Of a stretch of DNA of 64,000 bases, positions 1,357 to 57,767 are shown piece by piece. The DNA comes from Guillardia theta CCMP2712 (lineage: Eukaryota > Protista > Cryptophyta): positions 482,098 through 546,097 of the forward strand of contig NW_005434625.1 in assembly GCF_000315625.1 (NCBI RefSeq). Direction: 5' to 3'. How positions within the stretch are numbered: the first letter of the stretch is position 1; every line of letters starts with the position of its first letter. Below the pieces are notes generated by a model. That model searched no databases. It was not told the origin of the DNA and was given only the letters and a program-made list of their open reading frames with translations. Both the position numbers and the translations under genes were made by a program.

Positions 1357-4300
1357 CTATCTCTTGTTGGTATTGAACTTGACTCGCAGCAGATACTTGT
1401 TCTTGATCTATCAAACAGAGTCAATGAGTTGGAGCCCTGGTTCACCATCTTGAATCATCTCATCATGAACTCACCTGACTCACGTTGTACACGATGTACT
1501 CGTTGTACAGCAGAGAGCTTTTCAGCCCGTACATCTGTGTCCCCTTCCCACAAGGAACCTCAACCTGCACCCTCTACGGTCAGGGACGTGACCTCGGAGC
1601 TCGAACCCTCACCCCATCCTCGTCGATGAAGGACGCTTTCGGATCCGGCGCAGTCTTCCCGCAGCCCTTGACGGAGATGCAGTCCTTAGGAAGCCCCTTA
1701 GGAAGAGTCTCCTTGGCCGCCATCAGCTCGTGGGACTTCCCGAGCGCAACTTCGCTGAGCATGAGGAGGCCTTCGTTGTTGGACAGCTCGGCTTTGCAGT
1801 AGTTGGCCGACTTGGAGCTCATGTCGGCGAAATAAACTCCCTTGCCTGGGTCGGGGGACGTGAGGAGAAGGAGGGAGAGGAATGAAAGGATACCAAACAT
1901 GTAGCCGGTCACTGGAGCCTCGGGGGGAGCAATACGGAGACCCTGCGACAAGCCTTACCCTCCAGCTTCAGGATGACAACTCGCCTTGCCTGTGAGAGAA
2001 TTCCGACCCAGTTCGTTATGCGGGAACCGTGCCAGAGCAGCTTGCGGTTTGAATCTTTGGCGAAAGGAGCAAATCTGAAGAGGGAACAGGCACGGAAGAG
2101 GATGGTCAGGGGAGGAGGAATCCATCAGGTCAGTGGATGTCAATGATCAACCTTGATCTTACCTGTCCTTTTCGCCTTCTCGTTCGATCTCGAACAAGTC
2201 CATCAATTCGGTGGTGTAGGTAGAGTGAGTAGCCGCGTGAGTGTTCCTCAGGTACTGGTCGATCATCTTCCAACGCTCATCGTCCTTGGCTATCTGCAAC
2301 ACAAAGATGTCACCATGGAACAAGAAAGGGGGCGGAGCAAGGCGGACGGACCGGCTTGATGTCCGTCTTGAGCCGCTTGTAGTTGGCATCTATTGGGGAT
2401 TCGTCACCCCCTCCTTCCTTCTGAAGGCTGACAGCAATCTCCATCTCCAGCAAAGACTCTACAAGCTCCAGTTTCTCTTTCAGCTTGTCATGGGAGTCAA
2501 TCCGATGGACAGCCGTCATCCCACCAAGGCCGAAATTCTGAGGAACGATGGTGTAGAACTGGTTAGTACAGGAGAGAATCTTCTGGTTCCTGTCGAACTC
2601 ATCCAGGTTGGGATCATCGAGCACGTTCTGGATCTCCGTGAGGACTGAGTATCCTCGCTGAATCTGCTTCCTGGATAAAGCACCCAGCGGCATCTTGTCG
2701 AGATCGATCTCCATCTCGAGCATGGATTTCCTCATCATGTCAATGTCGAAGATCAGCTGGATGAGACTGGCGACGGTAGGTGGGAGTTTCGAGGAGGTGT
2801 CCTTCTGGAGCTGCGATCCGTGCTCGTCGGCCGCTGCAATACCGATCTCCATGATAGCAAACCGGCCGGGCTGCTGGGTGAAGCGATCTGGGGTGCGATC
2901 TTGCCAGGGGTTGCCGGTCTTCTCCTGGAAGAGCTTCTCGAACTCATGGATGCAGGAGTCCTTGTGCATCTTCTCCAGCTTCGTCCCCTTGGATTCCACT
3001 CCGATCCTGCCCCACTTGCGGAACAGATGAGTCGTCTTGCTGTCGTCTGACTCGATGATCTGCAGCACGTAGTAGCTGTTGAGGCCCTCGGATATGTCGG
3101 TTCGGTTCAGGGTGGCCGAGTAGACGTTGTCCCTCACTTCCAGAATGTGCGAATTGTCGGCAAGGCCGGACTCCACGTCGACAGCACCTTTCCCCTTCAC
3201 CATGATCTTGACAGTCTTGGACTGGGAGCTCTTCTTCTTCTTCTCGGGGTCCTCTGTCGCTTCCCCAGACAGGAGGTAGGGCTGCTCAGTCAGTCTCTTC
3301 CCGCTTGAGATGCATGCTTCCACGAACTCCAACTTCACCACCGGGAGCTTCCTCTTCACCGCCTGCAGGGTTTCAGCATAATATCAGACCCGATCAAGGT
3401 GGCAAAGTGCAACGAGACCTCCTTGATCGCGCTGCCACCCGCCGTATGCGCGCCGCTAGTGGTCAGAACGTGAGTGACGGACTTAGTCATCGACTTGACG
3501 ATGCTTCCTGCGGGTCTTGTCATGGTTCGCAGAAGGGGAAACCAAGAGCTCGCCTCCAGCAGACTTGATCTTGCCGGACCACTCGTCGAAGTCGATGCGA
3601 TAGTTCTTGGTGGAATGCAGCATGAAGACCATGTCCTTCAAGCACGTGCTGGGGTCCGAAGCTTCCTCTTGCCTCCTCTTCGCGTTGATCACCGCGAGCT
3701 CCTCCTCAGCCTTCATCAGCCGCTGCTTCTCTCTCTCCTGAACTGACTCCCTGACTTCTTCTTGCTCGCGGATCACAGCCTTGGGGATCGCGACCTTAAC
3801 GAATTTGAAGTTGTCGAGGTAGTCGTGGCCCATATCCTTCGGCATCTTGAATGCCTTCCTCTCTCCAGTGATACTGGAATATTGACATTTGGCAAATCCA
3901 TCCTCAGTCCAGGTCGTGCACTTGTACATTCCATCGCTGTACTGCAGCCTACCCTGACATTTCGGGCAGTCCCCAGGTACTCCGTGCAACATGATGTCTG
4001 CGCACCGACTTTGCAGGACAACCTCGCCTCCTCTGCTGTCCACGTCGTTATGCTCAAGGATTTCTTTGAGAAGGTTCCTTGACACGTCTTTCAGGGCATT
4101 GCGGATAGCAAACAGCTTGTCACTGTGTGCTTTGATTGCCTTCTCGTTCTTGTCCAGCTCGCTCGAGGCTGTGTTCTCCTTCTTGACAGTCTCACGGGGA
4201 GCTGCCTTCTCCTTCTTCATCTTCGACAATGGCACATCGTCGTCCTCAACAGCGTCCTCCTCTTTCGCCCTCTTCTTCTTCTTACCTGCTTCTTCTTTGA

Positions 4301-5187
4301 CATTCGCCTTCTGTTGGATGAGGGGCGTGTCGTCGTCCTCGTCAAGGTCTACCTTCTCCTCCTTCTTGGCTTTCTTCGACCCTTTCGCCGACTTGTTGTC
4401 TTCCCCAGCGGATCTCTTCCCGGATGCCTTTGCTCCTCCCTTCTCTCCCATCTTCTCTCTAACCATCGCCTGGTGGTCCGAATCCAGCAAGGAGAACCCG
4501 ATAACGTCCTCCGAGGACTTCAAGTCTTCGGGTTTCCCGTCCTTGAAGAGACAGTCCAGGTGATGCCACTTGGGCGTGGGAATGAAGGGTCTGCGATCCA
4601 TGGCCTCGATCCTCCCCATGCGCAGATTTCCTGCCTCAATCTTCGATTCGCACCCCCTGCATTCTGATCTGCTGCTCTTCGCGATCTCCACCTACAACCC
4701 AGTGTCATTGGAATGCTATCCAGTCAGTCAGCGTCTTTCATGGTGGTCACCTTGTAGTCACCGATGTTGCCTTCATCGTCTGCATCCGCCGGTTTGGACC
4801 CTCCTTTGCCTTTCTTGGAAGGCTGGGAGGGAGCTACAGAAAGATTTTCGTGAGGTTGCGAATTGCGCAAGGGGCGAATGCAGAAGTAAGAGAGGGATCA
4901 CCTGATGCGACTGCGTTTCCAGCAACCAAGTCTTTGATCTTCTTCTGGTCTTCGAAAGAGAGCTCTGACATTCCTGCTATGTCCGACACCTCTGGCTTTG
5001 CTCCCTTACCCCCAAAGAAGCAGTCCACATGGAACCACATAGGGACCCAGCCATCGAAAGAAGGTGACTGAACATACTTGCCCATGCGCAAGACATCCTT
5101 GCCTATGTTGTTCTTGCACTTCCTGCATGAAGCTCGCCCGCTCTTCGCATACTCCGCCACGTGCTCCTTGTCCGGGCGTCCCACCAT
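1357..5187 (-). CDS. PARP1: Poly(ADP-ribose) polymerase 1 (Zn1-Zn2-PADR1-BRCT-WGR-regulatory-catalytic), multi-exon
   Basis: [14 protein letters not shown]...WFHVDC and [13 protein letters not shown]...WHHLDC zinc fingers; [12 protein letters not shown]1; [12 protein letters not shown]; KMPLGALS regulatory domain; LLWHGSR, GYMFG|[16 protein letters not shown] and LLYNEYIVY give an intact H-Y-E triad. Last exon [16 protein letters not shown], stop at 1357-1359. Confidence 0.97.
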
Positions 5188-9960: not shown

Positions 9961-10385
9961 GCGAAGCCGAGAGACCCACTGGGATCAGAGTAACGGATTG
10001 CCTCCCCAAGTTCCTCAGTAAAGTAGTCACAGGGACCCCTACCCCGTCGTGCTCTGTAAAACGCACCCCTACGGATAGGGAAGACTACCCACCCATCCTT
10101 TGCTCCGGTTTGCCCTTCCTTTTTTAGTCAATAGAAAAATCCAATGAGTTTTAACGCTTCCGACTCAGCCATGAAAGCGGAACGCAGGAAGTTGAGAAAG
10201 AAACGAGAGGAGGATGGCGAGGACGAGGACAATGGCGAGGACGAGGAGCAGCTGTAATGGTTACTGTGCGGATAGAATTGAAGGGCCGGGATGGGTCAAG
10301 ATGTGTTTCTTCATGTTTGACGGCTGTTGAGCTGTGTTATCATCCGAAGTTAATTTTCCTGACTTTCGCAAGAATTTGCAGGGGA

Positions 10386-13058
10386 ATGGAAGAAAACATG
10401 GAGGAAGTGAAAGAGGTAAAGGAGAATGGAATTCGGTCCAACGCAGTGCTTGTTGAACAAGGTAAGCATCATTGCCGTGCGTGTTGTGGTGACTCCTTGG
10501 AAGGGAATCGGCCGAATTCCACAGCAGCACAGTATGAAGCCGAGCTACAAGAAATCAAAGCAAGAACGATGTACAATCTTATTGAGGAGGTGACAGTGGG
10601 TGCGGTGAAGAAGAGGTTGTTGCTATTGACGAACAGACAAGCTTCACTCTTCAACAAGAAGTCAGTGCAGAAACTGCTGGATGCCTTTGAGATCCCGCAC
10701 AAGCCAAAGCTGGTGATCAAACTTGTGCATTCGGAGCTCGGCATCAATCAGTTGAAGAGATATCGCACGGAGCATGAGGTAGTGATGAAAGGGAATCACG
10801 ATATCCGTGACGACTTCATGTATGATAATTATTTGTGGAGTCCACCCGGTCCTACTTACACGGAAGACGAGATTGAGCAGGGAGAGAACCGGCTGTGCCA
10901 GTTCTTCAGGGATGTGCTCGTTCCCCTGTGTGCTCAGACAAACGCGATCGTGTTAGCAGGATGTTCGGACTGGGACGTGATGTCTGCGGCGTTCTCGCGT
11001 GCGGTGAACCTGCAGAAGGCTTCGTGGGGGAGCGAGAAACCGTTCACTACGATAGGGTTCGGCTATCATTTCTGCTTCCACCTCAGCACCGAGACAGAAG
11101 GGACGATGGCCAATGACCTCTCCAATGCGTCGAATTTCTGGGCGAAGAAGCAGGACGTCATCGAGCGGTTCCTCCAATCGCGATGGGGAGACAAGAGCAA
11201 CTGGCTCAAGCAGGACATCGTGTCAGATTTCGACGACTACATCCTGTTTGATGCCATCAAGATCGATAACAAGGGGAATATCGAGGATGTTGAAGACACC
11301 ACTCCGTCGTCTACTCTGGAGAACATGATACTTGGTCACTTCACAGAGTCTTTGCCATGCATCTGCTTCCGAACAACAAGGAGCAACGCGGTTGTCACAA
11401 ACCAGGTTTGCACTGACATCCTTAACTCTGGGACGCCGATGGTGTTTCTTGATCTCAGAGAACGACCGTTGGTGGCGGAGGCAACCAGAGGTGAGAGGCT
11501 GCACAGGGCAATGGAGCACATCGTGCAGTATCGAACAGGTCTGATGGAGATGAATCAGAATGACCCTTACGACAACTGCAACCTTGCTTGGCTGCAGAGC
11601 ATAGTCTCTGGCTATGATGGGGCAGATGTCAAAGATGCGGTCTCGATTGATAGGACGTCGGAATGCATTCATGAGGCCATCACAAGGAGAGTGACGGAAG
11701 GGAAGAAGGGAAAGGTCGGGGATGGCGACCGTCTTCACGACATTCTGTCCATCGCTGACTTTCTTACCGACGAGCTGTGTCAAAACTTCTGGCAAAGAGA
11801 GCAGATCATGCAGAAGTTGGGCTACAAGCCTCACTTCGACGACTACGGTAAACTCAAGGTGTTCTACCGGGAGATGAGAACAACCTATCATTCCATCATC
11901 CGCGAGATGCTTGTCAACGGGAACTTCTACGGTCGCAATGTCTCAGACTTTTCGGGCCTTAGGCTGCTGATTCAAAAGCTGATCCGGATGGAGAGGATTC
12001 CTCTAGAGAACAGCATGGAAGGTCTCATGATCCTCAGACAGGCGTGGGACACCATCGACATCTGCACCTACATCTCCATCAAGTACAAGTGGGTTGCCAA
12101 GGTCGGGTACTTCCTCTTGCTCATCATCGCCGTTGCGTCGACAGCCGTGACGGTCATGAAGGAAAAAGTGGATCAGTGCATCGGGTACAGCGAGTGCCAG
12201 CACGAGGGGAGGACCAAGGTTGCCATCTTCCTGCTATCCTTGAGTGCTTCGGTGATCGGCTCCTTCATGGCCTACCTCAACCCGGTGACCCGCTGGCGCT
12301 CCCTCCGCAACATCGCGTCGAGGATCGAGAGCACGATCTGGATGTACAGGGCGAGGGTCGGGCCGTTTGCCATGACGCCTGGGGTAGTCGATGCTGCTGA
12401 GATGGCGCTGCGCGCCCGGCTCCTGTCCTTGAGGAACGAAATCTTAACTTCTGCTGACGTGACAGAGACGGCCTTCATGCGGGAGTACAGCCCTGGCATC
12501 TTCATGCACGGGCAGAGGGAAGCAACGAGGAGGAGGAAGAAGCGCCCGTCCAACGTGCTGATGCCGGAGGGGAACAGCCAAGACAACCACCAGAGCCCTG
12601 TTACCCCCCAGCTGTTCATCGACCTCAGAGTCCAGGAGATGATAGCGTTCTACCGCAAGAGGCTGCCTTCCTACAGGAACCAGTATAACATCTACCAGCT
12701 CCTCATCATCCTCAGCTCGGCGTGCGCAGCCATCCTCGCCTCCTTCGACATGCCGCAAGTGGCCGCCATCATAGTTTCCTTCTCTGCTTGCGTGGTGTCC
12801 TGGATGGAGTTTCATGGAACGAGGCAGAAGCTGGAGAGATACAACAAGTCCCTGATGAACCTAGTGAACATCGTCACGTGGTACGAGAGCATGACGGCGG
12901 TGGAGAAAGCGTCTCTGGAGAACATCACCACTTTGGTCATGCAGGTTGAAACAGCCATTATCGGGGAGAACAACTCGTGGTTGTCAGTGCCTTCCGCACA
13001 GAAGGACGAATCGAAGAGAGAGGAGGAGAAGGACCAGGAGGAAACCAGCTCTAAGTAG
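10386..13058 (+). CDS. SLOG (LSDAT/TRPM N-terminal-like) domain fused to two SLATT (DUF4231/SLATT_1-like) transmembrane domains
   Basis: Long, essentially intronless ORF. SLOG-like: PKLVIKL, FFRDVLVPLCAQTNAIVLAG, FTTIGFG, DYILFD, GTPMVFL. SLATT1: two TM helices then NPVTRWRSLRNIASRIESTIWMYRARVGPF. SLATT2: FIDLRVQEMIAFY, two TM helices, KLERYN, LVMQVETAIIGENNSW. Confidence 0.75.
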   Translation: MEENMEEVKEVKENGIRSNAVLVEQGKHHCRACCGDSLEGNRPNSTAAQYEAELQEIKARTMYNLIEEVTVGAVKKRLLLLTNRQASLFNKKSVQKLLDAFEIPHKPKLVIKLVHSELGINQLKRYRTEHEVVMKGNHDIRDDFMYDNYLWSPPGPTYTEDEIEQGENRLCQFFRDVLVPLCAQTNAIVLAGCSDWDVMSAAFSRAVNLQKASWGSEKPFTTIGFGYHFCFHLSTETEGTMANDLSNASNFWAKKQDVIERFLQSRWGDKSNWLKQDIVSDFDDYILFDAIKIDNKGNIEDVEDTTPSSTLENMILGHFTESLPCICFRTTRSNAVVTNQVCTDILNSGTPMVFLDLRERPLVAEATRGERLHRAMEHIVQYRTGLMEMNQNDPYDNCNLAWLQSIVSGYDGADVKDAVSIDRTSECIHEAITRRVTEGKKGKVGDGDRLHDILSIADFLTDELCQNFWQREQIMQKLGYKPHFDDYGKLKVFYREMRTTYHSIIREMLVNGNFYGRNVSDFSGLRLLIQKLIRMERIPLENSMEGLMILRQAWDTIDICTYISIKYKWVAKVGYFLLLIIAVASTAVTVMKEKVDQCIGYSECQHEGRTKVAIFLLSLSASVIGSFMAYLNPVTRWRSLRNIASRIESTIWMYRARVGPFAMTPGVVDAAEMALRARLLSLRNEILTSADVTETAFMREYSPGIFMHGQREATRRRKKRPSNVLMPEGNSQDNHQSPVTPQLFIDLRVQEMIAFYRKRLPSYRNQYNIYQLLIILSSACAAILASFDMPQVAAIIVSFSACVVSWMEFHGTRQKLERYNKSLMNLVNIVTWYESMTAVEKASLENITTLVMQVETAIIGENNSWLSVPSAQKDESKREEEKDQEETSSK

Positions 13059-32352: not shown

Positions 32353-34670
32353 ATGACAGTGAAAGCGCTACTTGCGATCGCCAGCATTGCGGTAACATGG
32401 ATACCCGCTCCATCGACAGCGCAGGGGTCTCCTGGACTTTGCTGCAAAGACGCTACTGATTGTTTCCGCCCTGGAGACTGGCGGCAGATTTTTCAATGCC
32501 CTGCATCCCATTGGAACAAGCACATGCCCCATCCCCCCTGGGAGTGGTACAAGCTTACGAATGCTTCGGGTGCTCAAAAGATCTGCTCAGGAGGCTCGAA
32601 GGAGTGGCACGCGTGTGTTGCAGACTCCGAGTGTCCGGGAGGGACATGCTCCATCGTCCCCCTCCCGGCCGACAAGTACGTGCACGAGTATATGTCCTGC
32701 TGCATGCAATGCGTGTGGAACTTGCAATATCCGATCGGAGATCCGATCCAAGTGACGTCAGGGCCCCTCCTGAATGAAACCAGCGAGCTCGGCGTCATCC
32801 CCAAGTACCTCAACTGCTCAGTCTTCCCGGACGAGTTCCGCCAGCTGGACTCCAGCAGCGCCGGGCACCCGGCTGGCTACCTGTCGATGAGCGAGTTGGA
32901 GCAGGGCTTCTTTTCTCAGATCCCGAACAAGCAGATGATTGACGCCAACTTCCTCAACGCGTCCGTGATGTTTGCGATCGCAGATCTCAACAAGGACGGG
33001 CTGTTGAGCTACGAGGAGTATGTCATCCTCAGGCACTTCTGGACTCCATTCCTCCTCTCCAGCACGGCTCCAGCACCCATCGACAACGAGAACACCCTCG
33101 CCATGGGCCCCCTCGGAGGAGTCTTCGTTGACAACAGCACGGTCAGTGTGTGGGTTGTGACAGCCAACAACCTTCTCCTTCGCCTGTACATCGCCAACGG
33201 CTGGTCGTCTGCAAGGACCAGACAACCGCAACCAGGCGAGGAGCTGTTTTATCAGCAGAACGCTGACCTGGATGGCTCCACCCGAATCTCTTTGGAGGAG
33301 CACTACTTCAGGGTGTTTGCAGACATCAACGGAAATGGAGTGTTGGAGCGCTGGGAGTACAACCTATCGCTCTATGACAAGAGCACGTCGGCTGGGGGCA
33401 ACTTTCAAGGATGGGCGTCGTGGGCGGATCACGACCTCAACGACGATGGAGTGGTCACCTTCATCGAGAGGAAGCGGATCTTTGCAGACAGGAATGCGGA
33501 CAACTTCATCAATCTCACGGAGTGGAAGCTCGCGGACTTTCCCACCGCATACGGTCCTTATCAAGGTCACAAAGGGAGCAACGGGATGATTGGAAAGGAG
33601 CAGTACGCGTTTTACTCGCTCTATCACTACTGCACGTTGCGCTCCTCCACAGCCTACGCTTCCTACTCCAGCAGCTACCCCTGGAGCTCGCAGTGTCCTC
33701 TGGTGTTTGCCATCCTGAACGACACCTCCTTCTTCCGCGACGCGTTAGAGAAGCAGCAGTTTGATCTGGGAACGCTTCAGGTTGATCCCAACCTTGCAGG
33801 CTTCGTGTATAGAGTGCTGAACAACGTTACTCGTCGCCTGGGCTGGCAGGGAACTCTAAAGGTCTTGCCCAACCCCCATAGAGAGCTGCAAGGAGCAGCA
33901 ACGGACCTCTCGTCCTACAACATCACTCCTCCGAACATCTACTCTCGGTCTTTCAACCTTGCCGTCATCACGGAGTACACGAATGTGCCCAGCGAGTGGT
34001 TGTGCACCTCCTCGCTCTGGCCAGATGACGGTCTCAGTGTCGTGGTGAGGTCCGAGGACCAGTCCATCTCTCTCTACACCGTCCTCGCAGAGATGATAGT
34101 TTCTCCTCAGTTCGTCAATTTCTTCTGCTCCTTGTTCTTCACCGTCCTCATCGTTGGACACGTGATTTGGATCATCGAGAGGTGGACCAACGAGACGATT
34201 TTCCGTCCCTTCTACGCGGAAGGAGTCATTGATGGCCTTTGGTGGGCGATGGTGACGATGACGACTGTCGGGTCAGTTCAACTCTCCCACAGGCCTCTTC
34301 ATCTGGCGTCTTTCCTCCTCCTCCTCCTCCTGATCCTGATCCTCCTCCTCCTCCTCCTCCTGATCCTGATCCTGATCCTCCTCCTCCTCCTCCTCCTGAT
34401 CCTGATCCTCCTCTTCCTCCTCCTCCGCCGCCGCCGCGTGTTACTTTTCTGATGGTTTGTCATAGATACGGAGACAAAGCCCCGGTCAGTGAGATCGGCA
34501 AACTCTTCGGCATCTTCTGGTTGATTTTTGGTCTGATTGTCTTCGGGACCTTCTCAAGTCAAGTCACTTCCTTCATCGGTGACCAACTTGCTGTCAACAA
34601 CATCGCTGATGCCGATTCTCTCGCTGGTTTCGTTGTGAGTCAGCCTCCTTGTCTTCCTCCCTCCCTCCCT

Positions 34671-46864: not shown

Positions 46865-47472
46865 TCCCTGGTCGATCAAGGGTTGGTCAAAGAAACGATA
46901 AAAAAATGTTCAAAACAAGCGTGGAAGCAGAATTGTCTAATGAAATGGTAGCATTCAGATGAAATTTTTCAATCAGATTGTACATAAATCGAGATAAGTG
47001 TTGAATGCTCAGTAAATGTGGGAGAAGCAAGAAAGTCAGTTGATCAGCAACAAGGTGGAGAAAGAGTGAGAGATGTCAGGTAGAAAGAAAGAGTGAGAGA
47101 TATATCAGGTAGAAAGATTGGTGGAAGGGAATTACGTCAGGGAGCAACGACGTGGATTATAGCCATAAGGAAGGAATTGAGCAGCGACAAGAATATCAAT
47201 GAAAGATGGAAGAGGACGAAGAGGCCGGGGGACTAGGTGGCCAGTGGATGGTGCGCAAAAGAAGCATGGTCAATCTCTGCCATGATGTCCTGGTTGATGC
47301 CTTGCATGTCGCCCGGCTTTGGCGTCAGACATGGCGTCCGGCATCAGCTGGTCCGGCATAGCGTCATCGACCAGGTCATCGACTCTGCATGGTACGAGTG
47401 GGGATGAGGTCCAATGTGAGATGCTCTTCCGAAGTTCAAGTGGCAAGTCACTCAGGATTCATCTCTTAAATC

Positions 47473-47556
47473 TAGTACCGTAGTAGTACCGTAGTAGTAC
47501 CGTAGTAGTACCGTAGTAGTACCGTAGTAGTACCGTAGTAGTACCGTAGTAGTACC
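47473..47556. repeat. 11-bp perfect tandem repeat (GTAGTAGTACC) x7 plus a partial unit
   Basis: Directly visible. Confidence 0.95.
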
Positions 47557-47929
47557 GGCTTTCGTTGAGCGTTTCGAAAGAAATGCTCAGAGCCTCGGAA
47601 CTTTTAGTAGCCGGTTCTTTGACAAGGCGTTCGTCAAGACTTGTATGCGAACACCTATAAGACTCATCCCTCATCGAACAACCCTGAAACTGCCCACTCC
47701 TCCCTCCCTCCCTCCCTCCCTCCCTCCCTGCCTAATCTGGTCGATGGTCCCGGCAGCCTCTGTGGAAGCTGCATCTTCGGTAACCGCGGACCCCACGGTG
47801 TCGAGGTGCACGTCTGCTTGTTATGCAGGTCCCCGGATCTCCAATGGGATCTCCTTCGAGTGTGTGGACTCTCGCGACTCGCTCGCCCCGCTTGTGCCTC
47901 GCAGTCAATCAGTTTAAGAGTGAGGGTTA

Positions 47930-48030
47930 NNNNNNNNNNNNNNNNNNNNNNNNNNNNNNNNNNNNNNNNNNNNNNNNNNNNNNNNNNNNNNNNNNNNNNN
48001 NNNNNNNNNNNNNNNNNNNNNNNNNNNNNT
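47930..48030. other. Assembly gap (run of about 100 N)
   Basis: N run, flanked by (CCCT)n-rich sequence. Confidence 0.99.
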
Positions 48031-48355
48031 ATGTAATCCCTCCCACACTCCCTCGCTTCCTCCCTCTTCCTCCCCGCCCCTCCATCTCTCCCTCCCTCCC
48101 AACCGTGCTTGAACGAGGAGACGAGGAGGAGGGGGGGCATGGCGACGTGGCGATCAATTTGTCTCAGCTCAAGATCACCGTGAAGGGCATTGGCTGTAAT
48201 TTCGAGCCATGTTTCTGCCTTTAACTTTGAGATAAGCCCAAGGGCGTTTCCAGGATGGCAGGAGATCATCTGTAAACATCAATCGACTTTATTGAACTGA
48301 CATCTTCAATCACTCTATATACAATGAACATCAACATGTCTGACCACCTCCTTGC

Positions 48356-51300
48356 CTACTCCCCGATACTGTTTCGAAATCTCACGTACCTCTTGTGCCC
48401 ATCCATCGACTTGAGCGCATGAAACTCCTTCAGGATCAGCCTGAGCTCGCACACGTGCCCCTCTACCCCCTTCCTCCTCGTCTCCTCGTTCACCACCCGC
48501 ACGTTGATCGCCACGTCCCGATACCCCCCCGACAGCCTCGAGTCGTACGCCTCGTCCAGCCTGTTCTTGATCCTCACCACCTCCAGCTCCGGATCCTCCA
48601 GCACTGCCCTCACGCCCTCCGTCAGCTCCTCTACCCCCGTGAACACAAGGCTCTGCCGCACCACGTCCGTGAGGCAGTAGACCTGGTAGCTGTACGACCG
48701 CACGACCTTCTCGATGGCCCTCGACGCGCTCTTGATGCTCGCCCACCTCACCCGCCTCTCCATCGATCTATCCGCTACCGCCTCCCGCCAGCGCACGTAC
48801 GAGGGCCCCTCTCTACCCTCCCATGCTGGCAAGTAGCCGTCGACGGTCTCGGCGAGCGACTGGACCTTGAGGAGGAAGGTGGGGTCGAGGAGGACCGCCT
48901 GCGCGTAGAGCTGGTCCAGGGACTCGACCCTCATGACAGGGTTGGCCTTGCCCGGTCCAGTCCATGAGGGCACGCACAGGAGGGAAAGGTCGAAGATGCT
49001 GGGCTTGCTGTTCTCGCAGTCGACGTCTCGAGAGCTCCACTGCTCGGCTCTTCCAGCAGGATGGAGGCTGCAGATGTCGGCGAGCCTGGTCAGCTGCGGC
49101 TTACTGTCATCCTGCTCGAGCAGCAGGGCCCAGCACTGGTCGTACTTGACCTGCTCCTCCTTGACGTAGCTCATGGCCCTGCGAAACTGAAGCTTCCGTG
49201 ATACCTGGAAGTAGAGCCACACGGAGAGCAGCACATATGCTGTAAAGGGAATGTAGTCCATGCTGAAGGACTTGGAGCTGCGGAACCAGTCCATGTCAAC
49301 GGCTGTTGCTCCAATGCTTATGAAAATAATGTAAACGGGCAGCACGTGCAGTGTGTACTTCTCCCGGAACTGCAGGATGAGGCCGTAACTGAGGTCTGCG
49401 ATGCCAAACAAGAAGTCATGGGCGCTCAAGGGGTCTCGCAAGCTCAGAGGCATCGACGTGGCCAGCTCCATCAAGCCGACAACATGAAAGCAGGAAGCAG
49501 CGAAAGTCTTTGCGACGAATGAGTTGCGCATAAGAGCAAAAAATACCGCCAGGAAGCAGAAAGAACTTGGCAAGACGTAGTTTACGTATCGCAAGGTACT
49601 CCGCCATGTCTGCCTCAGCTCGAAACGGATGCTCGTGCCCCTGGCCAGCTCTGGAGAGGCGTCGCAAAGCTGCAGCCCCGGCCAGTCGCTGCATGAGAAG
49701 GAGGAGACTTCCACCCATGACGCGTTCCCTGCCTTGGTCGCTTGCTCCCATCGCTCCAGCACGAGCTCCTGAGGGTCGTACTGCGCCTGCTCCGGATCTG
49801 CAGCGATCTCTAGCTGCCAGCCGTTGACCACGACGGACTCATTGAAGGTGAAGTAGAGGGAAGCATTGTCCACGGACACTGATGAGGGATGGAAGCGCGA
49901 GCAGGCGTCTCTGACCAGCGCGAAAGAGCTCTTGTACAGCTCTGCTCGCGCACCCACTGATCGGTCTCGAACCCGCCTCAGCTCCAGGCGATACAGGGTC
50001 GAGCTCATGGCGCCGTTTGTGAAGGTGGCGTGCGCTTTCGCCCCAGCAAACACGAAGTAGCCGTAGGCGACACCTACCATGAAGAGAATGGCCTGGAAGA
50101 AATGCTTGTTCACAGCGTTGGTGAGAGGGGTGGACGAGAACATGATGGTGGAAGTCGCTACTTCGTCAAGGCCGTGCGCTGCTCTCTCAAGGTGCTCGTC
50201 AAGCACGTTTCCTCGATGATGGCTTCTGACTCTCGCGAGCGTGACTTCAGACCTGTCTCCCTCCTCGTCCTTGCACGAGGATAGGGAGGAGGTAAAGTCG
50301 CTCGGCGACATCGAAGCTCCGCCGCTGCGCAGGCTAGCAGGAACAAGCAAGCCCAGGCTCAGCTGTCTTGCAAGCATCCCCAGCACTTGCCAAGGCTTGA
50401 AGCAGTCCCTGCGGAATGAAAGAATCTGCTTATAGCTCTGGTACCTCAATGATGAGGTCGAATACACCAGCTGGTGCATGGGCATGACTGCAAGCCTGAG
50501 CTCGCACACGTGCCCCTCTACCCCCTTCCTCCTCGTCTCCTCGTTCACCACCCGCACGTTGATCGCCACGTCCCGATACCCCCCCGACAGCCTCGAGTCG
50601 TACGCCTCGTCCAGCCTGTTCTTGATCCTCACCACCTCCAGCTCCGGGTCCTCCAGCACTGCCCTCACGCCCTCCGTCAGCTCCTCTACCCCCGTGAACA
50701 CAAGGCTCTGCCGCACCACGTCCGTGAGGTCTGAGAGTCTGCCGTGGCATAGCAGCTGGACCTTCTCGATGGCCCTCGACGCGCTCTTGATGCTCGCCCA
50801 CCTCACCCGCCTCTCCATCGATCTATCTGCTACCGCCTCCCGCCAGCGCACGTACGAGGGCCCCTCTCTACCCTCCCATGCTGGCAAGTAGCCGTCGACG
50901 GTCTCGGCGAGCGACTGGACCTTGAGGAGGAAGATGGGGTCGAGGAGGACCGCCTGCGCGTAGAGCTGGTCCAGGGACGCCGCACATGCCTGGTGTGTCT
51001 GCCGCCCTGTAGCAGAGCGCGGCTCCTCCGCCTCTATCTCCTCTGGGCTCTGGCTTGAGTCCTCGGTGCTTACGACCACTATCGGCTCCCGGCACCTGCC
51101 ATCCAGCTCTGCATACGCCGTAGCTCGCTTCACCACGCGGCTCAAGGTTTCTATCGCCGAGCTTGTCCGCATCTCCTCCCATCGCTCCTCCAACCCGCAA
51201 GCAGCCTCCTTCCGGGCCTCCTGCAGTGCCTGCAGCCGCAGCCGCTCTCGCATCAAGAGGAAAGCCGCCCCGGCCCCAAGCATCCCAACACTCGGGTACC

Positions 51301-52126
51301 GCCACCCTCCCGCGGCGAGCCCCGTCCCAGTTCTGATGGCGCCCGACAGCGCGACGAGCTCGACGGCGTAAGGCTCGATGTAGGCTACCGGCACAGGGAA
51401 GACAAGGAGGTCCTGCACTGAGCTCTCAGCCCGCCCGCCCTCCCATGCGTCCCCCCGCCCACTGACCGTCAGGACGAAGACGATGAAGCTGTAGCTCGGG
51501 GTGTTGAGCCCGGTCCGGCCGGCGCCTTGACTCATCATCCTCACGAAGATGAGGAGGTTGAGGATCGCGTCGAGTACACCGTAGGCTATGACCACCTGCT
51601 TGCATCTTTCACGTCTCTCACTCATGCAACATGAGCATCATCATACCAGCTTGGCAACTTCAATCTGACGCCTCGACGCAAGCAAAACCACGACTACACA
51701 GATCACCCCGGATATGAAGTTGGTGGCGATCTCGAGAGGCATCTCCCATGAGCAAGCAAGAAACTGGCTCCTGGCATACGCCTCGGTGGAGTACTCCCGC
51801 ACCCGCTTCCCTCCTATCACAAGCGAGAAGTAGCCTGCCTCCTGCACCCAGCGCATCTTGACCGCGCAAAGCGCTATCCATGCTCCGCTCAAGAGTGCGA
51901 GTGCCACCTGCGCTGGAGGCCAGGCAAGAAGAGCAGACAGAGGCTCGTAGGAGAAGAAGATGACGCTGGGCTTTGACCTGTAGATGACTCGTTGCTCCAC
52001 ACAACGTTGAAGACGGTCTCCCTGGGAGTGGGAGTAGAAGCGAGCGAACTCTAAGGAGGAGTCATGCATGTCACGAGCAAGCGGCCTGAAGGTGGAGGGA
52101 GAGAGACATGGCTCATTTTCGTTCAT
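48356..52126 (-). CDS. Polytopic membrane protein with two RelA/SpoT-like nucleotidyltransferase domains and a discoidin-like extracellular loop
   Basis: Each domain reads IKSASRAIEKV...LTDVVRQSLVF...RIKNRL...GGYRDVAINVRV...HVCELRL, with TM clusters before each. The loop VVVNGWQL...DPQELVLE...SWVEV is discoidin-like. Probable introns at ~51596-51646 and ~51413-51466 join the 161-aa and 1089-aa ORFs. Confidence 0.75.
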
Positions 52127-53480
52127 TTCCCTCCCTTGTCGCTACGTGGCAGCAGCTGCTCATCGCCGTCTTGAAGCCGCTGCATTTTCTTTCCCCATAG
52201 ATCCAATGGATTTTTTGTACACCTCGGAGATCCTTTTGTTTGGGGTTCACGATGAAAATCTTCCGGTAAATTTGGTTACTTTCATTCACCATTTGCAAGT
52301 TGTATTGGATTTTGTTGAATTTGAAATTTGCAGGCTTCGGAACTCGGCGATTTTCGGACTCCTAAAAGGGCCACAGGCTGCGAATGCTTTCAGCTACTGG
52401 CATCGGCGACCCGGCGGCCCGGAGCCGGGGCCCGGCGATCATGCCGAATCTCTGAGGCCTCAGGCTACAGGGACCTAAACGGTCACGTCACTGGTCCCCG
52501 CCGGTTACTATGAACCTGCGAAATGACACAAAGAAGCTTGAGACGGCGATGAGCGGCTGATGTCAGAGGAATAACCCGAAAATCGGAGCGGCTCCTCGAA
52601 CAGTGGGAGGGAGGGCGGACTGAGAGCTTGCAGGACGAGCCTTACGACGTCGAGCTCAGGCGCCATCAGAAACCCGAGTGTTGGGATGCTTGGGGCCGGG
52701 GCGGCTTTCCTCTTGATGCGAGAGCGGCTGCGGCTGCAGGCACTGCAGAAGCGAGCGAACTCTAAGGAGGAGTCATGCATGTCACGAGCAAGCAGCCTGA
52801 AGGTGGAGGGAGAGAGACACGGCTCATTTTCGTTCATTTCCCTCCCTTGTCGCTACGTGGCAGCAGCTGCTCATCGCCGTCTTGAAGCCGGTGGGTCCGA
52901 GTCGCTGCATTTTCTTTCCCCATAGATCCAATGGATTTTTTGTACACCTCGGAGATCCTTTTGTTTGGGGTTCACGATGAAAATCTTCCGGTAAATTTGG
53001 TCACTTTCATTCACCATTTGCAAGTTGTATTGGATTTTGTTGAATTTGAAATTTGCAGGCTTCGGAACTCGGCGATTTTCGGAACCTAAAAGGGCCACAG
53101 GCTGTTGTCAACTTCGAATGCTTTCAGGCTACTGGCATCGGCGACCCGGCGGCCCGGAGCCGGGGCCCGGCGATCATGCCGAATCTCTGAGGCCTCAGGC
53201 TACAGGGACCTAACTTGAACGGTCACGTCACTGGTCCCCGCCGGTTACTATGAACCTGCGAAATGACACAGAGAAGCTTGAGACGGCGATGAGCGGCTGA
53301 TGTCAGAGGAATAACCCGAAAATCGGAGGCTCCTCGAATGGGAGGGAGGGCGGACTGAAAGCTTGCAGGACGAGCCTTACGACGTCGAGCTCAGGCGCCA
53401 TCAGAAACCCGAGTGTTGGGATGTTTGGGGCCGGGGCGGCTTTCCTCTTGATGCGAGAGCGGCTGCGGCTGCAGGCACTG
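52037..53480. repeat. Direct tandem duplication, unit about 710-730 bp (52037-52748 and 52749-53480)
   Basis: AGAAGCGAGCGAACTCTAAGG begins both units; near-identical sequence with small indels. Confidence 0.9.
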
Positions 53481-54125
53481 CAGGAGGCCCGGAAGGAGGC
53501 TGCTTGCGGGTTGGAGGAGCGATGGGAGGAGATGCGGACAAGCTCGGCGATAGAAACCTTGAGCCGCGTGGTGAAGCGAGCTACGGCGTACGCAGAGCTG
53601 GATGGCAGGTGCCGGGGGCCGATAGTGGTCGTAAGCACCGAGGACTCAAGCCAGAGCCCAGAGGAGATAGAGCCGGAGGAGCCGCGCTCTGCTACAGGGC
53701 GGCAGACACACCAGGCATGTGCGGCGTCCCTGGACCAGCTCTACGCGCAGGCGGTCCTCCTCGACCCCATCTTCCTCCTCAAGGTCCAGTCGCTCGCCGA
53801 GACCGTCGACGGCTACTTGCCAGCATGGGAGGGTAGAGAGGGGCCCTCGTACGTGCGCTGGCGGGAGGCGGTAGCGGATAGATCGATGGAGAGGCGGGTG
53901 AGGTGGGCGAGCATCAAGAGCGCGTCGAGGGCCATCGAGAAGGTCCAGCTGCTATGCCACGGCAGACTCTCAGACCTCACGGACGTGGTGCGGCAGAGCC
54001 TTGTGTTCACGGGGGTAGAGGAGCTGACGGAGTCGGGACGTGGCGATCAACGTGCGGGTGGTGAACGAGGAGACGAGGAGGAGGGGGGTAGAGGGGCACG
54101 TGTGCGAGCTCAGGCTGATCCTGAA
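53340..54125 (+). pseudogene. Inverted, internally deleted third copy of the nucleotidyltransferase domain
   Basis: 53407-54031 is the reverse complement of ~50672-51296. A deletion at ~54032 removes RIKNRL...GGY and shifts the frame. Ends in ELRLIL. Confidence 0.85.
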
Positions 54126-54352
54126 CCGCGGGCAACGGCTGACAGGGATGGCTGTTGGGATGGGGCGACTAGCGACTTGTGATATGCAGTGGATGGGGCG
54201 ACTGTTGGAGGTTCAAGAGTGAGGGGTCTCGATGGCGTCCAGCCCTAGCTGGCACAAGAGTTTGAGAGGAGGAGATTCGGTCGAGGGGATCAAGGCTATA
54301 TTACACAAGAGCTGTACAGGGAGGACGTCAGGACTTCAAGTCGTTGTGCACG

Positions 54353-57300
54353 TCACGCGTTGGCGAGGTCCTCGTGCGATTCACTGGCAGGATGGCCGAA
54401 GACAGACTCGTAGCTAGGAGCTGACGGCACACAGTCAGCCGGCGGCAGAGCTGACGTTGCCCCCCGCCGTGAGGAAGGAGTGTCCGATCGATGCCAGCAT
54501 CTCTTGCGAGCTGCGACGAAGCAGCAGAACAGCAAGCTCGATCCTGCCAGCGTAGGCACCAGTACGACGACGAGGAAGTTGGAGGGGCCGGACGGTTCGA
54601 GGGCCTGCGGAGCCGCGAACGTCTTTATGAGTTGAAAGGACAAAGTGCCCATGGAGATCAGAGATACTCCCATGGAATGAAGCGTCGGGTTGTGAGCGAT
54701 CTTGTCCGCCAGTGACGCGCTTGTCGTCGCCATCGCTTTCTCCTTGTTTGACACTGACGTCACGACTGTCGAGAGGATGTCGACTTGAGCGGCTGCACGT
54801 CTTGACTGAGAGCTGCTTGCAGTGCTTGTGATGGAGGTGGAGGAGTCTTGTTGCAGGCCCATGGACGTCAGCACGGCTTCTTGGAACGCTTCTTTCACCG
54901 GCCCCTGGTACTCCGACACTGCCAGTCCGGATACCTTGCAGTGAAACCACACCTTCAAGCGCTCGCCGCTGAACAGGACGGGGAGCGGCGTGGTTAGAGG
55001 GGCCCAAGTCGTGGGAGGCGGAGGCGAGGAGGCGACAGTGGAGGTAACAAGGCCGGAGGTTGGAGGAGCCTGAAGAGTAAACTGATTTGACTCGTCAATG
55101 ATGTTGCACTCAAAGTTCAGTCCGAGCGGTTTGCTCTGATACCGCAGGGTGCCAGGGGAAGCGAGCACGGAGATACAAGGCTCTATCTCCAACGCTAGGA
55201 CCTCGTCCGATGCTGACGTCACGTACACGGTCCAACCGTCTGGACTCAGCACGGGGAGCATGTGCGCGGATGTCTTGCCGCTGCTCCAATGCCACACGCC
55301 CTCACCAGAGGACGCGAGAAGAGCAGAAACAGAGCCGTCAGAGGACCAGACGAAGAGAAATTGCCCGCGAGGACCCACAACCGGCCGGGTGAGAAGAAAA
55401 GCGCCAAAGTCCTGCGACCAGATGGTTGCGCCAGAGGAGGCGTTGAGGGTCAGGATACGCTTGTCACTGCATGCTGCATGCAGCAAGTCTTGCTGAGGGT
55501 TCGCCGTAAGTGCAGAACAGAAGCTTGTTCCCGTAGAGACCGTCCAGACTTGTGCCCCTCCAGACGTCTGCTGGGCGTGGAGGCTCTTGTCCGTTGCAAA
55601 GAAGACGAGCTGAGCGTTGGAGCTCACACAGGGAGGAGAGAGAGCTTGCTGGCCTCTCTGGACCGACCATGACAGAGAGGCTGAAGAAGCATTGTAGTTG
55701 TAGACGAGCAACCTCGATGCGCTCGTGATGTAGAGCTTGTCGCCAGATTCTAAAAAGCTTGCGGAGGAAGTGACATCAAAATGAACACTCCACTTCAACC
55801 TGCCACTGTTTGCGTCCAGCGCCAGCAGGCTCGGAGAGCCATCTGTCAGCACGTAAACGCTGCTGCCATCGTAACTCACGTATGGGGCTGAGGACCAGGA
55901 GGTCCCAGGAGAGTAAGACCACAGCTCTTGTCCGGTCACGCTGTCTCTCGCACGAATGCTCGTTTCATCCTGTTGTTCCGACGAGGAGGAGGGGGTCCCA
56001 AGGCCCACGACCATGACTCGTCCGTCTGGAGTGAGAGCAGGAGCCGTCAGAGTCTCGCTGTCAAAATCGAAAGTTCGAAGCAAGCTCCCCGTCTGAGTGC
56101 TGAACACCTTCACCTCCGACCCCGACGACGAGTAGCCTAAGTTGCCGTCATTGCTGATCACGACAGGGAAGACTGACGCCGACTGGAATGACCACAGCTG
56201 CATCATGTGGAGAGAAGAACAGGAGGGCTGTGAAAACGCGTTGAGGTACCAGTCAACCAGGCGGAATCGAGTCTCGAGAGCCAAGACAGAAGAGCCTTGC
56301 GCCACGAACAGGTAGGAGCTGCTGGGGTCGAGAGCGAGGCTGATGGGACCGAGAGCTTTCTCAGCTGTGGTATACTTCCATACCGATGCTCCGTTGAGAG
56401 CTGAGAAGGAGTGGATTTCGTTGCTTGCAGTGCCCACAAACACAAGCGAAGCATCAGCACTCACAGCCAGGCTTGACATCGCAGAGAGCAACTGCCTTGA
56501 GCCCCATGCTTCCGATCCGTCAGAGGAGTCCAGTGCCAACAACATGCCGCTCTCGATCCCCACGTACAGCCGCCCTGCTCCAGGATCGTCAGCCAACAAG
56601 AAGGAGGTTGCTGCGTGCTTCCATTGCCATAGCAGATATCCCGTAAGTGTGTTGATCGCCATGACCCCCTCACTCTGAGAGCACATGAAAACTCGACTGC
56701 CATCTGCACTCACAGCAGGCCAGGAAGCGAATGTTCCTTGCATCTTAAAGCGCCACAAGACGGAGCCTGTGCTCGCGTTCAAAGCTCTCAAAGTCGAGTC
56801 GCTGTAGCCCACAAACAGTCTGCTGCCATCTGTACTTAATGCAAGCAAGAACGGTACTGGATCTTCACGTGCAGCTGCTGCTGACCATAGCGTCACACCA
56901 TTCGAGGGGTTGAGAGCGAGGACGACACCGTCTGACGTGCCCACGAAAACACTTCGACCGCTGGTGCTCACGACGACTCTCGATGAGACTGGCGTCTGCA
57001 AGGAGCGAACCCAAACCTGAGCCCCTGTGATGGCATCGAGAGCGTGAAGACTTTGACCAGATGCGACATAAACTTTGTTGTCTGCTCGACTTGTAGCTGG
57101 AGAGGTGGAAAACTGCTGTTGGGATTGGTAGGACCAGCCCTTAATCCCCGTCGCTGCATCGAGAGAGTACACCTGTCGGTCATCGGACACTACGTAGACC
57201 CTCGTCCCGTCGGCACTCACAGCCGGGGCATGCTCTATGTTCCCTCCCGTCGTATTTCTCCACACCTCCGATCCCACTTTCGGGTCCAGCTGTACCCTCG

Positions 57301-57496
57301 AGGACGCGTCAGCGAGCCATGCTGCGAGCTGGCCACACGGCGCATGAGAGACGAAGTTGGTCGGGCAGCAGCTGCTGCAGCCGTCGGTCTTGTTGTCCAG
57401 GAATCTCCCAGGAGGGCACGAGGAGCCCTCACTGTCTGCTCCTGACATGCGCGCGCATGCCACCAGCACCAGTGCCGCCAGTATCCTGGCCGCCAT
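54353..57496 (-). CDS. Type I membrane protein with PQQ/BamB-like beta-propeller repeats (probably two propellers), intronless
   Basis: Signal peptide MAARILAALVLVACARMSGA, Cys motif CPPGRF...CSSCCP...C, many repeats of P-x-VS-x-DG...VYV...ALDA-x-TG...W, a Ser/Thr/Pro stalk, and TM FLVVVLVPTLAGSSLLFCCFV. Confidence 0.85.
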   Translation of the reverse strand: MAARILAALVLVACARMSGADSEGSSCPPGRFLDNKTDGCSSCCPTNFVSHAPCGQLAAWLADASSRVQLDPKVGSEVWRNTTGGNIEHAPAVSADGTRVYVVSDDRQVYSLDAATGIKGWSYQSQQQFSTSPATSRADNKVYVASGQSLHALDAITGAQVWVRSLQTPVSSRVVVSTSGRSVFVGTSDGVVLALNPSNGVTLWSAAAAREDPVPFLLALSTDGSRLFVGYSDSTLRALNASTGSVLWRFKMQGTFASWPAVSADGSRVFMCSQSEGVMAINTLTGYLLWQWKHAATSFLLADDPGAGRLYVGIESGMLLALDSSDGSEAWGSRQLLSAMSSLAVSADASLVFVGTASNEIHSFSALNGASVWKYTTAEKALGPISLALDPSSSYLFVAQGSSVLALETRFRLVDWYLNAFSQPSCSSLHMMQLWSFQSASVFPVVISNDGNLGYSSSGSEVKVFSTQTGSLLRTFDFDSETLTAPALTPDGRVMVVGLGTPSSSSEQQDETSIRARDSVTGQELWSYSPGTSWSSAPYVSYDGSSVYVLTDGSPSLLALDANSGRLKWSVHFDVTSSASFLESGDKLYITSASRLLVYNYNASSASLSWSVQRGQQALSPPCVSSNAQLVFFATDKSLHAQQTSGGAQVWTVSTGTSFCSALTANPQQDLLHAACSDKRILTLNASSGATIWSQDFGAFLLTRPVVGPRGQFLFVWSSDGSVSALLASSGEGVWHWSSGKTSAHMLPVLSPDGWTVYVTSASDEVLALEIEPCISVLASPGTLRYQSKPLGLNFECNIIDESNQFTLQAPPTSGLVTSTVASSPPPPTTWAPLTTPLPVLFSGERLKVWFHCKVSGLAVSEYQGPVKEAFQEAVLTSMGLQQDSSTSITSTASSSQSRRAAAQVDILSTVVTSVSNKEKAMATTSASLADKIAHNPTLHSMGVSLISMGTLSFQLIKTFAAPQALEPSGPSNFLVVVLVPTLAGSSLLFCCFVAARKRCWHRSDTPSSRRGATSALPPADCVPSAPSYESVFGHPASESHEDLANA

Positions 57497-57767
57497 TGCC
57501 AGCTGCCAAGGGTGAACAGATTTACTCAAGTGGGAGCAAAGACCAGTAGGAGAGTGATAGACCAAACAAACTCGCCCCAGAGTATTATTTGGTCAAGACG
57601 AGAGACAGCGCTATCCTCCTGCAAGTTTCGATGATTTCAACGGTATGAACCCAAATGCATTTATTAGTTTAGCTAGGGACTTCGTTGATTTTACTGAAAT
57701 ATGAGCATGGAGGCTGAGCAGAGGGTCAAGAATGTGTTAGGGAGGTAGCAACTTGCAACAGTGAAGG

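Follow-up and report, generated by a model that had tools for sequence, protein, structure and literature searches.

A tandem membrane protein with Tas1-like synthetase domains and its receptor-like gene family in the cryptophyte Guillardia theta

GUITHDRAFT_111103 (XP_005830037.1; UniRef L1J3Z8, automatically named 'RelA/SpoT domain-containing protein') is a minus-strand gene in a 64-kb window of the Guillardia theta CCMP2712 genome (64,000 nucleotides of contig NW_005434625.1, C49:482098-546097; coordinates below are counted from its first letter) and one of about 50 receptor-like genes that make up its family in this alga. Its product consists of two six-helix transmembrane (TM) modules, 12 TM helices in all, one putatively F5/8-type-C-like ectodomain and two domains with the fold of a small alarmone synthetase (SAS). 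By sequence profile, the closest characterised relative of these domains is the Tas1/Apk branch of (p)ppApp synthetases, at a distance of about 20% identity, and not RelA/SpoT proper. The reading favoured here, with a probability of about 0.58, is that of a ligand-regulated pseudoenzyme/enzyme receptor whose second domain would make a 3'-pyrophosphorylated nucleotide from ATP. An initial annotation, made from the sequence of the window, had proposed an undescribed class of receptor with two RelA/SpoT-type nucleotidyltransferase domains; no published description of the family was found in a literature of incomplete coverage.

In the VIA structure search with the AlphaFold2 (AF2) model of the enzyme domain (predicted local distance difference test, pLDDT, 94), the top 26 rows were all RelA/SpoT homologues (RSH) or SAS, with RelQ at Z 14.2, RelP at 13.5 and CapRel and Tas1 both at 12.0, Tas1 having an rmsd (root-mean-square deviation) of 2.6 and the highest identity (20%). 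Polymerase-beta relatives came next at Z of 7.5 or less, and FaRel2 scored 6.4. Foldseek gave 33 matches at E <= 1e-3, all of them RSH or SAS among the matches listed. The nucleotidyltransferase fold first proposed is thereby borne out, but the nearest relative is a different one. A search with the family profile placed Tas1 first (E 2.5e-4), followed by the SAS YwaC (4.5e-3), and the jumbo-phage protein L051 together with 81 relatives bridges the algal family to Tas1: family and phage profiles align by hhalign at 99.6% (E 5e-24), and the phage profile finds Tas1 at E 9.6e-12 as against E >= 0.02 for ppGpp synthetases. The best viral structural matches (E 6e-8 to 6e-7) were the RelA/SpoT domains of phage polyvalent proteins, which have been described as conflict domains (PMC5512222). 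In the alignment all family motifs map onto Tas1, E-x-Q and GHxxY..R included, and the family's D-x-x-R in place of DxxGxR and its terminal GHxRY..R are Tas1 features, Tas1 itself having D-L-A-R and E-I-Q-V. From this alignment we take the E of ELQ to be the probable counterpart of the catalytic Glu of Tas1. Across 122 sequences K75, R79, K83, D97, R100, R146, E170, H187 and R194 are invariant and Y145 is kept in at least 90%, so that the expected conservation of the catalytic D and E among paralogs was indeed found; the Syn1 basic residues, Syn2 Asp, Syn3 Tyr and Syn4 Glu are present in both domains of GUITHDRAFT_111103.

Other searches were negative. The GUITHDRAFT_111103 protein had no match to Pfam RelA_SpoT, single-sequence searches of Pfam and the PDB (Protein Data Bank) found no match, NCBIfam and PHROGs returned noise only, tblastn against phage records found no match, and a pattern scan of GTDB, a weak negative given its narrow pattern, found no bacterial relative. 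Tas1/Apk1 and Apk2 produce (p)ppApp (PMC10083569), and (p)ppApp is the leading guess for the algal product, not a result. As a separate observation, the phage bridge protein (L051:2443-4059, on a 363-kb phage contig) is a Tas1-like protein of 538 amino acids (aa). With its 81 relatives, most of which measure 330-500 aa, it makes up a jumbo-phage family that has apparently not been named and whose members are candidate (p)ppApp synthetases.

The initial annotation had treated the two domains as equals, which does not hold. Outside a box of 29 nucleotides (nt) and the C-termini, those of GUITHDRAFT_111103 are nearly identical in DNA (236 of 237 nt, and 220 nt at 99%), and domain 1 is degenerate: its RSY box has become LLC, its ELQ has become ELR and the C-terminal GHxRYxxxR is lost. 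The same asymmetry recurs in some 35 proteins with two domains, drawn from several sources, in which domain 2 keeps RSY, KNR, GYRD, ExQ and GHxRY..R and domain 1 is variably degenerate. In G. theta the domain cores evolve in concert by intragenic gene conversion. Among the 19 loci analysed (about 13 independent groups), 15 loci (10 of the independent groups) have cores that agree within the gene at 96-100% of their DNA positions, third codon positions included; between genes the median core identity is 58-73%, and on a tree the domains pair by gene. Outside the G. theta expansion the domain-1 and domain-2 cores are mostly 28-49% identical.

Conversion stops at particular places. In most homogenised loci similarity falls to 30-57% over the 29-nt RSY box and over the C-terminal helix, the box forming an island between tracts of at least 96% identity in four genes, and in 18 of the 19 loci the conversion tract stops short of the Q codon of ExQ or inside it. 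Domain 1 sometimes acquires the RSY box (L042, P0155), and the LLC box has never been taken by a domain 2. These limits point to selection on domain 2 as a working enzyme, although the tracts may also end simply where homology ends. Domain 2 is thus probably the working enzyme of the family, and domain 1 a tolerant, regulatory partner and probable pseudoenzyme. The conversion pattern would then amount to a natural mutational scan, marking the RSY box, ExQ and the C-terminal helix as indispensable to the active domain.

GUITHDRAFT_111103 departs from its family in one respect that bears on activity. Its ELR, reported initially for both copies, is present in both; as a family feature it fails, as glutamine is kept in domain 2 of 18 of the 19 loci and in 114 of 122 domain-2 sequences, and ELR as a new catalytic motif was rejected. 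This is the only locus of the 19 in which the tract overran the domain-2 Q, ending 8 nt beyond the Glu codon, so that ELR in both domains is local to it, a conversion overrun from domain 1 into domain 2. The Syn4 consensus of RSH synthetases is ExQIRT (PMC5566576), and its ExQ glutamine is absent from GUITHDRAFT_111103 and present in domain 2 of the family. Contigs of two studies agree with the AGG codon at every base and join it to unique DNA on its 3' side, and the codon also occurs in a scrambled partial copy next to the gene; therefore the Q-to-R change predates that rearrangement. Other departures from columns conserved in at least 70% of sequences are D-to-Q, S-to-Y and R-to-I. Relative to the nearest paralog, the ratio of nonsynonymous to synonymous substitution (dN/dS) is 0.15-0.38 across the TM, ectodomain and enzyme domains, all of which are under purifying selection. 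The chance that GUITHDRAFT_111103 is as active as its paralogs, with the ExQ glutamine and the last conserved Arg lost, falls somewhat short of even; it may be a weakened family member, and a canonical paralog rather than this gene alone would be the informative one for activity.

The repeating unit of the family runs from a conserved cytosolic motif through TM1, an ectodomain of about 143 aa (about 150 had been estimated), TM2-TM6, a long helix continuous with TM6 and a variable linker to the enzyme domain. There are six helices in each module; the TM segments first noticed are there, but their count ('several' and 'about five') was too vague or too low. In the subfamily of GUITHDRAFT_111103 module 1 is without the ectodomain, the short outer loop encoded by exon 1 being the site of its loss. 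The fraction of K/R is high in loops 2-3 (0.19) and 4-5 (0.12) and in the post-TM6 helix (0.18), as against 0.03 and 0.06 in loops 3-4 and 5-6, and N-glycosylation sequons per 100 aa number 1.19 in the ectodomain (0.60 expected) and 0.28 in the enzyme domain (0.36 expected). From these patterns we infer, in agreement with the arrangement proposed at the outset, that both enzyme domains are cytosolic and that the ectodomain is outside or in a lumen. Three agreeing tests suggest, weakly, that the ectodomain resembles F5/8 type C / CBM32 domains: its profile matches the GH92 mannosidase 7nsn (E 9e-6), Pfam F5_F8_type_C is matched weakly by 2 of 87 sequences and the top Atlas matches are all F5/8C, at 0.90. 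The AF2 model of the module-2 TM region and ectodomain (pLDDT 93) has beta-strands there. No signal or transit peptide is present, since the N-terminus is hydrophilic for 70 residues and the first hydrophobic stretch is TM1.

The motifs on which the initial annotation was built are all present in two minus-strand open reading frames (ORFs), 51641-52126 (161 aa) and 48356-51625 (1089 aa), whose exons belong to a single mRNA. Both GT-AG introns are missing from a cDNA-type contig (run X3), which extends to at least 52208, and the exons sum to 160+43+1018 = 1221 codons. There is an in-frame stop upstream of the exon-1 Met, inside the transcribed 5' region, and the N-terminus and TM1 of exon 1 are homologous to module 2 (hhalign 75%, E 2.6e-5). 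The public model XP_005830037.1 starts at Met20 and wrongly retains intron 2. The cDNA contigs show that the gene is transcribed in ordinary culture material. Misassembly was suspected because the locus has an internal repeat of 99% identity and a scrambled copy beside it. It was ruled out by the paralogs and by DNA contigs from two studies, which match the unique parts of the locus, with a depth about 2.5-fold over the repeat: the host assembly searched (87.1 Mb, 669 contigs) holds about 30 loci in which a single open frame carries two such domains at a spacing of about 2.1 kb, and 15-20 further loci with one. This genome-wide count of paralogs had been proposed as a check.

In the favoured reading, a unit of TM1, discoidin-like ectodomain, five TM helices, cytosolic helix and pyrophosphokinase domain would have been duplicated in one chain; module 1 would have lost its ectodomain while its enzyme domain degenerated, leaving sensing and catalysis to module 2. 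A glycan or other ligand on the ectodomain would move TM2-TM6 and the helix continuing from TM6, and this movement would switch on domain 2 against domain 1 as its regulatory pseudoenzyme partner. Domain 2 would then transfer pyrophosphate from ATP onto a ribose 3'-OH, giving a cytosolic second messenger or growth-arrest signal. Supposing activity, the acceptors would most plausibly be adenosine nucleotides (giving (p)ppApp), although at less than even odds, guanosine or mixed nucleotides being appreciably less probable and an RNA 3' end or other acceptor slightly less so again.

Several points weigh against this reading. Pfam RelA_SpoT is reached by 2 of 16 paralog domains, below the curated cut-off (best E 2.8e-4). 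The structure scores fail to separate Tas1 from the ppGpp-making RelQ and RelP or from the tRNA-modifying CapRel (Z 12-14), and the choice of acceptor is labile within the RSH superfamily (PMC12691689; 10.1101/2021.04.30.441581), which is why ppApp stays a guess. A structure search with the combined TM and ectodomain model matched no F5/8C-type domain, returning only generic helical bundles (best Z 8.8) and, at background, rhodopsin-like rows (Z 6-7.7). With 3 reads in 6% of one raw RNA run, expression seems to be low. Coverage by cDNA contigs runs over 48894-52208 and leaves 48356-48893, in domain 2, without a separate match, probably because the repeat collapses.

The same layout could serve an immune suicide or dormancy receptor, which would sense a pathogen glycan and drain ATP/ADP into (p)ppApp through domain 2, with arrest or death of the cell. 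Toxins and conflict proteins of phages are its closest kin (PMC5512222, PMC10083569), and the family evolves by birth and death, with duplicates that are almost identical, partial copies that have been rearranged, and gene conversion. This alternative nevertheless appears unlikely: a dN/dS of 0.29 to the nearest paralog indicates purifying selection on the ectodomain, neither a hydrolase nor an immunity gene was seen in linkage, and the gene is transcribed in ordinary culture. Catalysis on a macromolecule (the CCA of tRNA or another RNA 3' end), or towards a different nucleotide product, is less probable still. FaRel2, PhRel and CapRel pyrophosphorylate tRNA (10.1101/2021.04.30.441581), CapRel equals Tas1 in structural score (Z 12.0) and basic residues peculiar to the family (RSY, KNR, terminal RxE) might bind RNA, but sequence profiles pick Tas1 and not CapRel or FaRel2, and FaRel2 reaches a Z of only 6.4.

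A slightly smaller chance falls to domains that bind nucleotide without turnover and gate the six-TM bundle as a channel or transporter, or that act as scaffolds. Such a role would fit the degeneracy of domain 1 throughout the family, the replacement of Syn2 DxxG by DxxR, the absence of Syn4 IRT and the missing glutamine of GUITHDRAFT_111103. Against it, active Tas1 shows the same departures (D-L-A-R, E-I-Q-V), the metal ligand D and the base E are invariant in the 122 sequences and the TM and ectodomain model matched no channel or transporter above background (best Z 8.8). That the locus is a decaying copy or an artefact of assembly is very improbable: the four replacements at conserved columns, the scrambled neighbour and the near-identical internal repeat would suit it, but the 1221-codon frame is intact, splicing is correct, dN/dS is 0.15-0.38, the DNA of two studies agrees and about 30 paralogs are alike. 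An artefact is excluded, whereas some partial loss of function may have occurred.

Table 1. Features of GUITHDRAFT_111103 and the adjoining satellite (window coordinates)
Feature	Position	Strand	Remarks
Exon 1, 160 codons	51647..52126	-	start Met, cytosolic N-terminus, module-1 TM1, short outer loop, TM2
SVIFFSYEPL motif, module 1	51938-51967	-	
Module-1 TM1	51860-51916	-	
Module-1 TM2	51674-51730	-	
Intron 1, 51 nt	51596..51646	-	GT-AG, stop-containing; joint in cDNA contig
Exon 2, 43 codons	51467..51595	-	module-1 TM3 and first half of TM4
Intron 2, 54 nt	51413..51466	-	GT-AG, in frame; cDNA contig
Exon 3, 1018 codons and stop	48356..51412	-	remaining module 1, domain 1, all of module 2, domain 2
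Module-1 TM4 (second half), TM5, TM6, then cytosolic helix	51251..51412	-	predicted by hydropathy and paralog alignment
Domain 1	50399..50998	-	Tas1/SAS-like synthetase fold, degenerate
K-x-x-x-R-x-x-EK, domain 1; domain 2	50762-50788; 48707-48733	-	
Unconverted 29-nt box, domain-1 version	50730..50758	-	QLLCHGRLSD
L-x-DVVR, domain 1; domain 2	50711-50728; 48656-48673	-	
RIKNR, domain 1; domain 2	50615-50629; 48560-48574	-	
GGYRD, domain 1; domain 2	50570-50584; 48515-48529	-	
HVCELR, domain 1; domain 2	50495-50512; 48440-48457	-	
Module-2 TM1 and conserved N-terminal motif TIMFSSTPL	50045..50149	-	motif 50123-50149
Ectodomain	49610..50038	-	predicted beta-sandwich of ~143 aa with three N-glycosylation sequons; probably F5/8 type C / CBM32 (discoidin)-like
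Module-2 TM2-TM6	49115..49609	-	TM6 prolonged as one long cytosolic helix (R..D...YD..W motif); AF2, positive-inside pattern
Domain 2	48359..48955	-	small-alarmone-synthetase fold; K, R, K, RSY, D, R, KNR, GYRD, E, GHKRY..R kept
Unconverted 29-nt box, domain-2 version	48675..48703	-	VRSYSYQVYC
AGG (Arg) in place of conserved domain-2 ExQ glutamine	48440..48442	-	same codon as domain 1
Rearranged satellite	52036..54125	+	~720-nt tandem duplication of 5'/promoter region and inverted partial copy

The satellite lies head-to-head with GUITHDRAFT_111103. Its inverted copy runs from TM6 to the 5' part of domain 1 and, across a 95-nt deletion with frameshift, to the 3' end of domain 2, making a domain-1/domain-2 chimera, and it holds a truncated ORF (53421-54182) that is publicly annotated as a protein of 253 aa (P0192). 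Independent DNA contigs contain its junctions, as a joint 50576-50672 and as loose ends at 48429. The satellite looks like a template-switch rearrangement, and the homogenised cores promote rearrangement. The nearest paralog, on C13, adjoins a similar pop-out chimera: L031:1-1737 (C13:132000-133736) is frameshifted and joins module 1 to the domain-2 3' end at a crossover in the homogenised core, and a similar fragment lies in L033:1515-2469. On the other side of GUITHDRAFT_111103, 220 nt past its stop codon, a 27-nt inverted piece of the enzyme coding sequence (48110-48136) adjoins the assembly gap 47930-48029, the junction being present in run X2, and an 11-nt tandem repeat of about 8 copies occupies 47462-47568. 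Elsewhere in the window are a 933-aa ORF with SLATT_1, DUF4231 and SLATT_3 (10257-13058), a candidate nucleotide-gated membrane effector that could in principle read such nucleotides, a PARP1-like gene (2310-4691; zf-PARP, PADR1, WGR, PARP_reg), a 699-aa ORF with weak EF-hand matches (32353-34452) and a 1070-aa ORF (54353-57565) for a putative receptor-like surface protein that has PQQ-type beta-propellers between a signal-like N-terminus and a TM segment at the C-terminus.

Many family members consist of a single unit, and P0011, P0007 and P0023 have two complete units. Outside G. theta, public data hold 5140 clusters with a match to the domain at E <= 1e-3, of which 451 reach E <= 1e-30; the named matches are cryptophytes (Hanusia, Rhodomonas, Hemiselmis, Chroomonas), while Atlas look-alikes in diatoms and ciliates and in TPR fusions are leads only. 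A tandem-module member (L053:5492-10885), on a metagenome contig of a compact marine eukaryote, adjoins a gene for a cyclic-nucleotide (cNMP)-binding protein. A viral origin of P0177 was rejected, its contig being that of a compact marine eukaryote with the tandem module. In G. theta itself about 20 more loci carry a far more divergent domain in frames of 800-1100 aa (C4, C31, C32, C37, C53, C71, C100, C117, C229, C339), and canonical plastid-type RSH genes lie on contigs C47 and C24, the only two with HD_4.

Comparison with known systems sets the family apart from each of them. It shares with Tas1/Apk1 (a Pseudomonas aeruginosa type VI secretion effector, PDB 6ox6) and MuF-fused Apk2 the series K..R..K..Y.GD, D-x-x-R, GY, E-x-Q and GHxxY..R, and the best sequence match (E 2.5e-4 directly, 1e-11 through the phage relatives; Z 12.0, rmsd 2.6). 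However, the algal protein is encoded by a eukaryotic nuclear gene with introns and is a multi-pass membrane protein with an ectodomain and a tandem pseudoenzyme/enzyme pair; neither a PAAR or MuF delivery domain nor an adjacent immunity gene was found, the N-terminal part being the six-TM module. The phage polyvalent proteins and the L051 family provide the best viral structure matches and the sequence bridge, but are soluble and without TM helices or ectodomain. With RelP/RelQ (SasA/SasB) and the long RelA/SpoT/Rel enzymes the SYNTH fold is common (Z 13-14 for SAS, 9-11 for long RSH) and the D and E positions are kept, whereas the algal domains are 10-14% identical, lack DxxGxR and ExQIRT as well as HD hydrolase, TGS and ACT domains, and are membrane-bound. 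Plastid RSH1, RSH2/3 and RSH4/CRSH likewise have nuclear-encoded, eukaryotic synthetase domains of the RSH superfamily, but in plants and algae they are soluble and mostly carry a chloroplast transit peptide (PMC10107265). Membership among them was rejected on account of the 12 TM helices and the lack of a signal or transit peptide and of an HD hydrolase domain; the contrast with soluble plastid enzymes had already been drawn in the initial annotation.

The likeness to membrane cyclases noticed there stands as far as layout goes. Mammalian transmembrane adenylyl cyclases (6TM-C1-6TM-C2), in which C1 and C2 together form the active site, and receptor guanylyl cyclases have the same arrangement, with two unequal cytosolic domains and a helix joining membrane and enzyme. 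The catalytic fold is unrelated, however, domain 2 alone holds all motifs and single-module members are common; the TM bundle showed no structural match to adenylyl or receptor cyclases, and membership in the class III cyclases was rejected, the fold being SYNTH.

New here are the bridge from Tas1 to the phage proteins, the asymmetry between enzyme and pseudoenzyme domains, the measurement of the conversion tracts, a correction of the exon model and the recognition of ELR as a conversion overrun. Tentatively, cryptophytes, and perhaps other protists, may have built a phage- or toxin-type (p)ppApp synthetase into ligand-gated surface receptors, converging on the 12-TM cyclase layout of enzyme and pseudoenzyme, with (p)ppApp or a related 3'-pyrophosphorylated nucleotide as a cytosolic messenger. 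If ligand-gated nucleotide synthesis is true, the system would be categorically new. The eukaryotic alarmone synthetases characterised so far are mostly plastid enzymes. According to a 2022 review, no (p)ppApp had been detected in plants or algae and animals have no obvious synthetase (PMC10107265). With about 50 genes in one alga and 451 clusters beyond it, cytosolic alarmone messengers in eukaryotes become directly testable with soluble domains of 200 residues, and the nucleotides with which the family may signal would be ones known until now chiefly from bacteria and chloroplasts.

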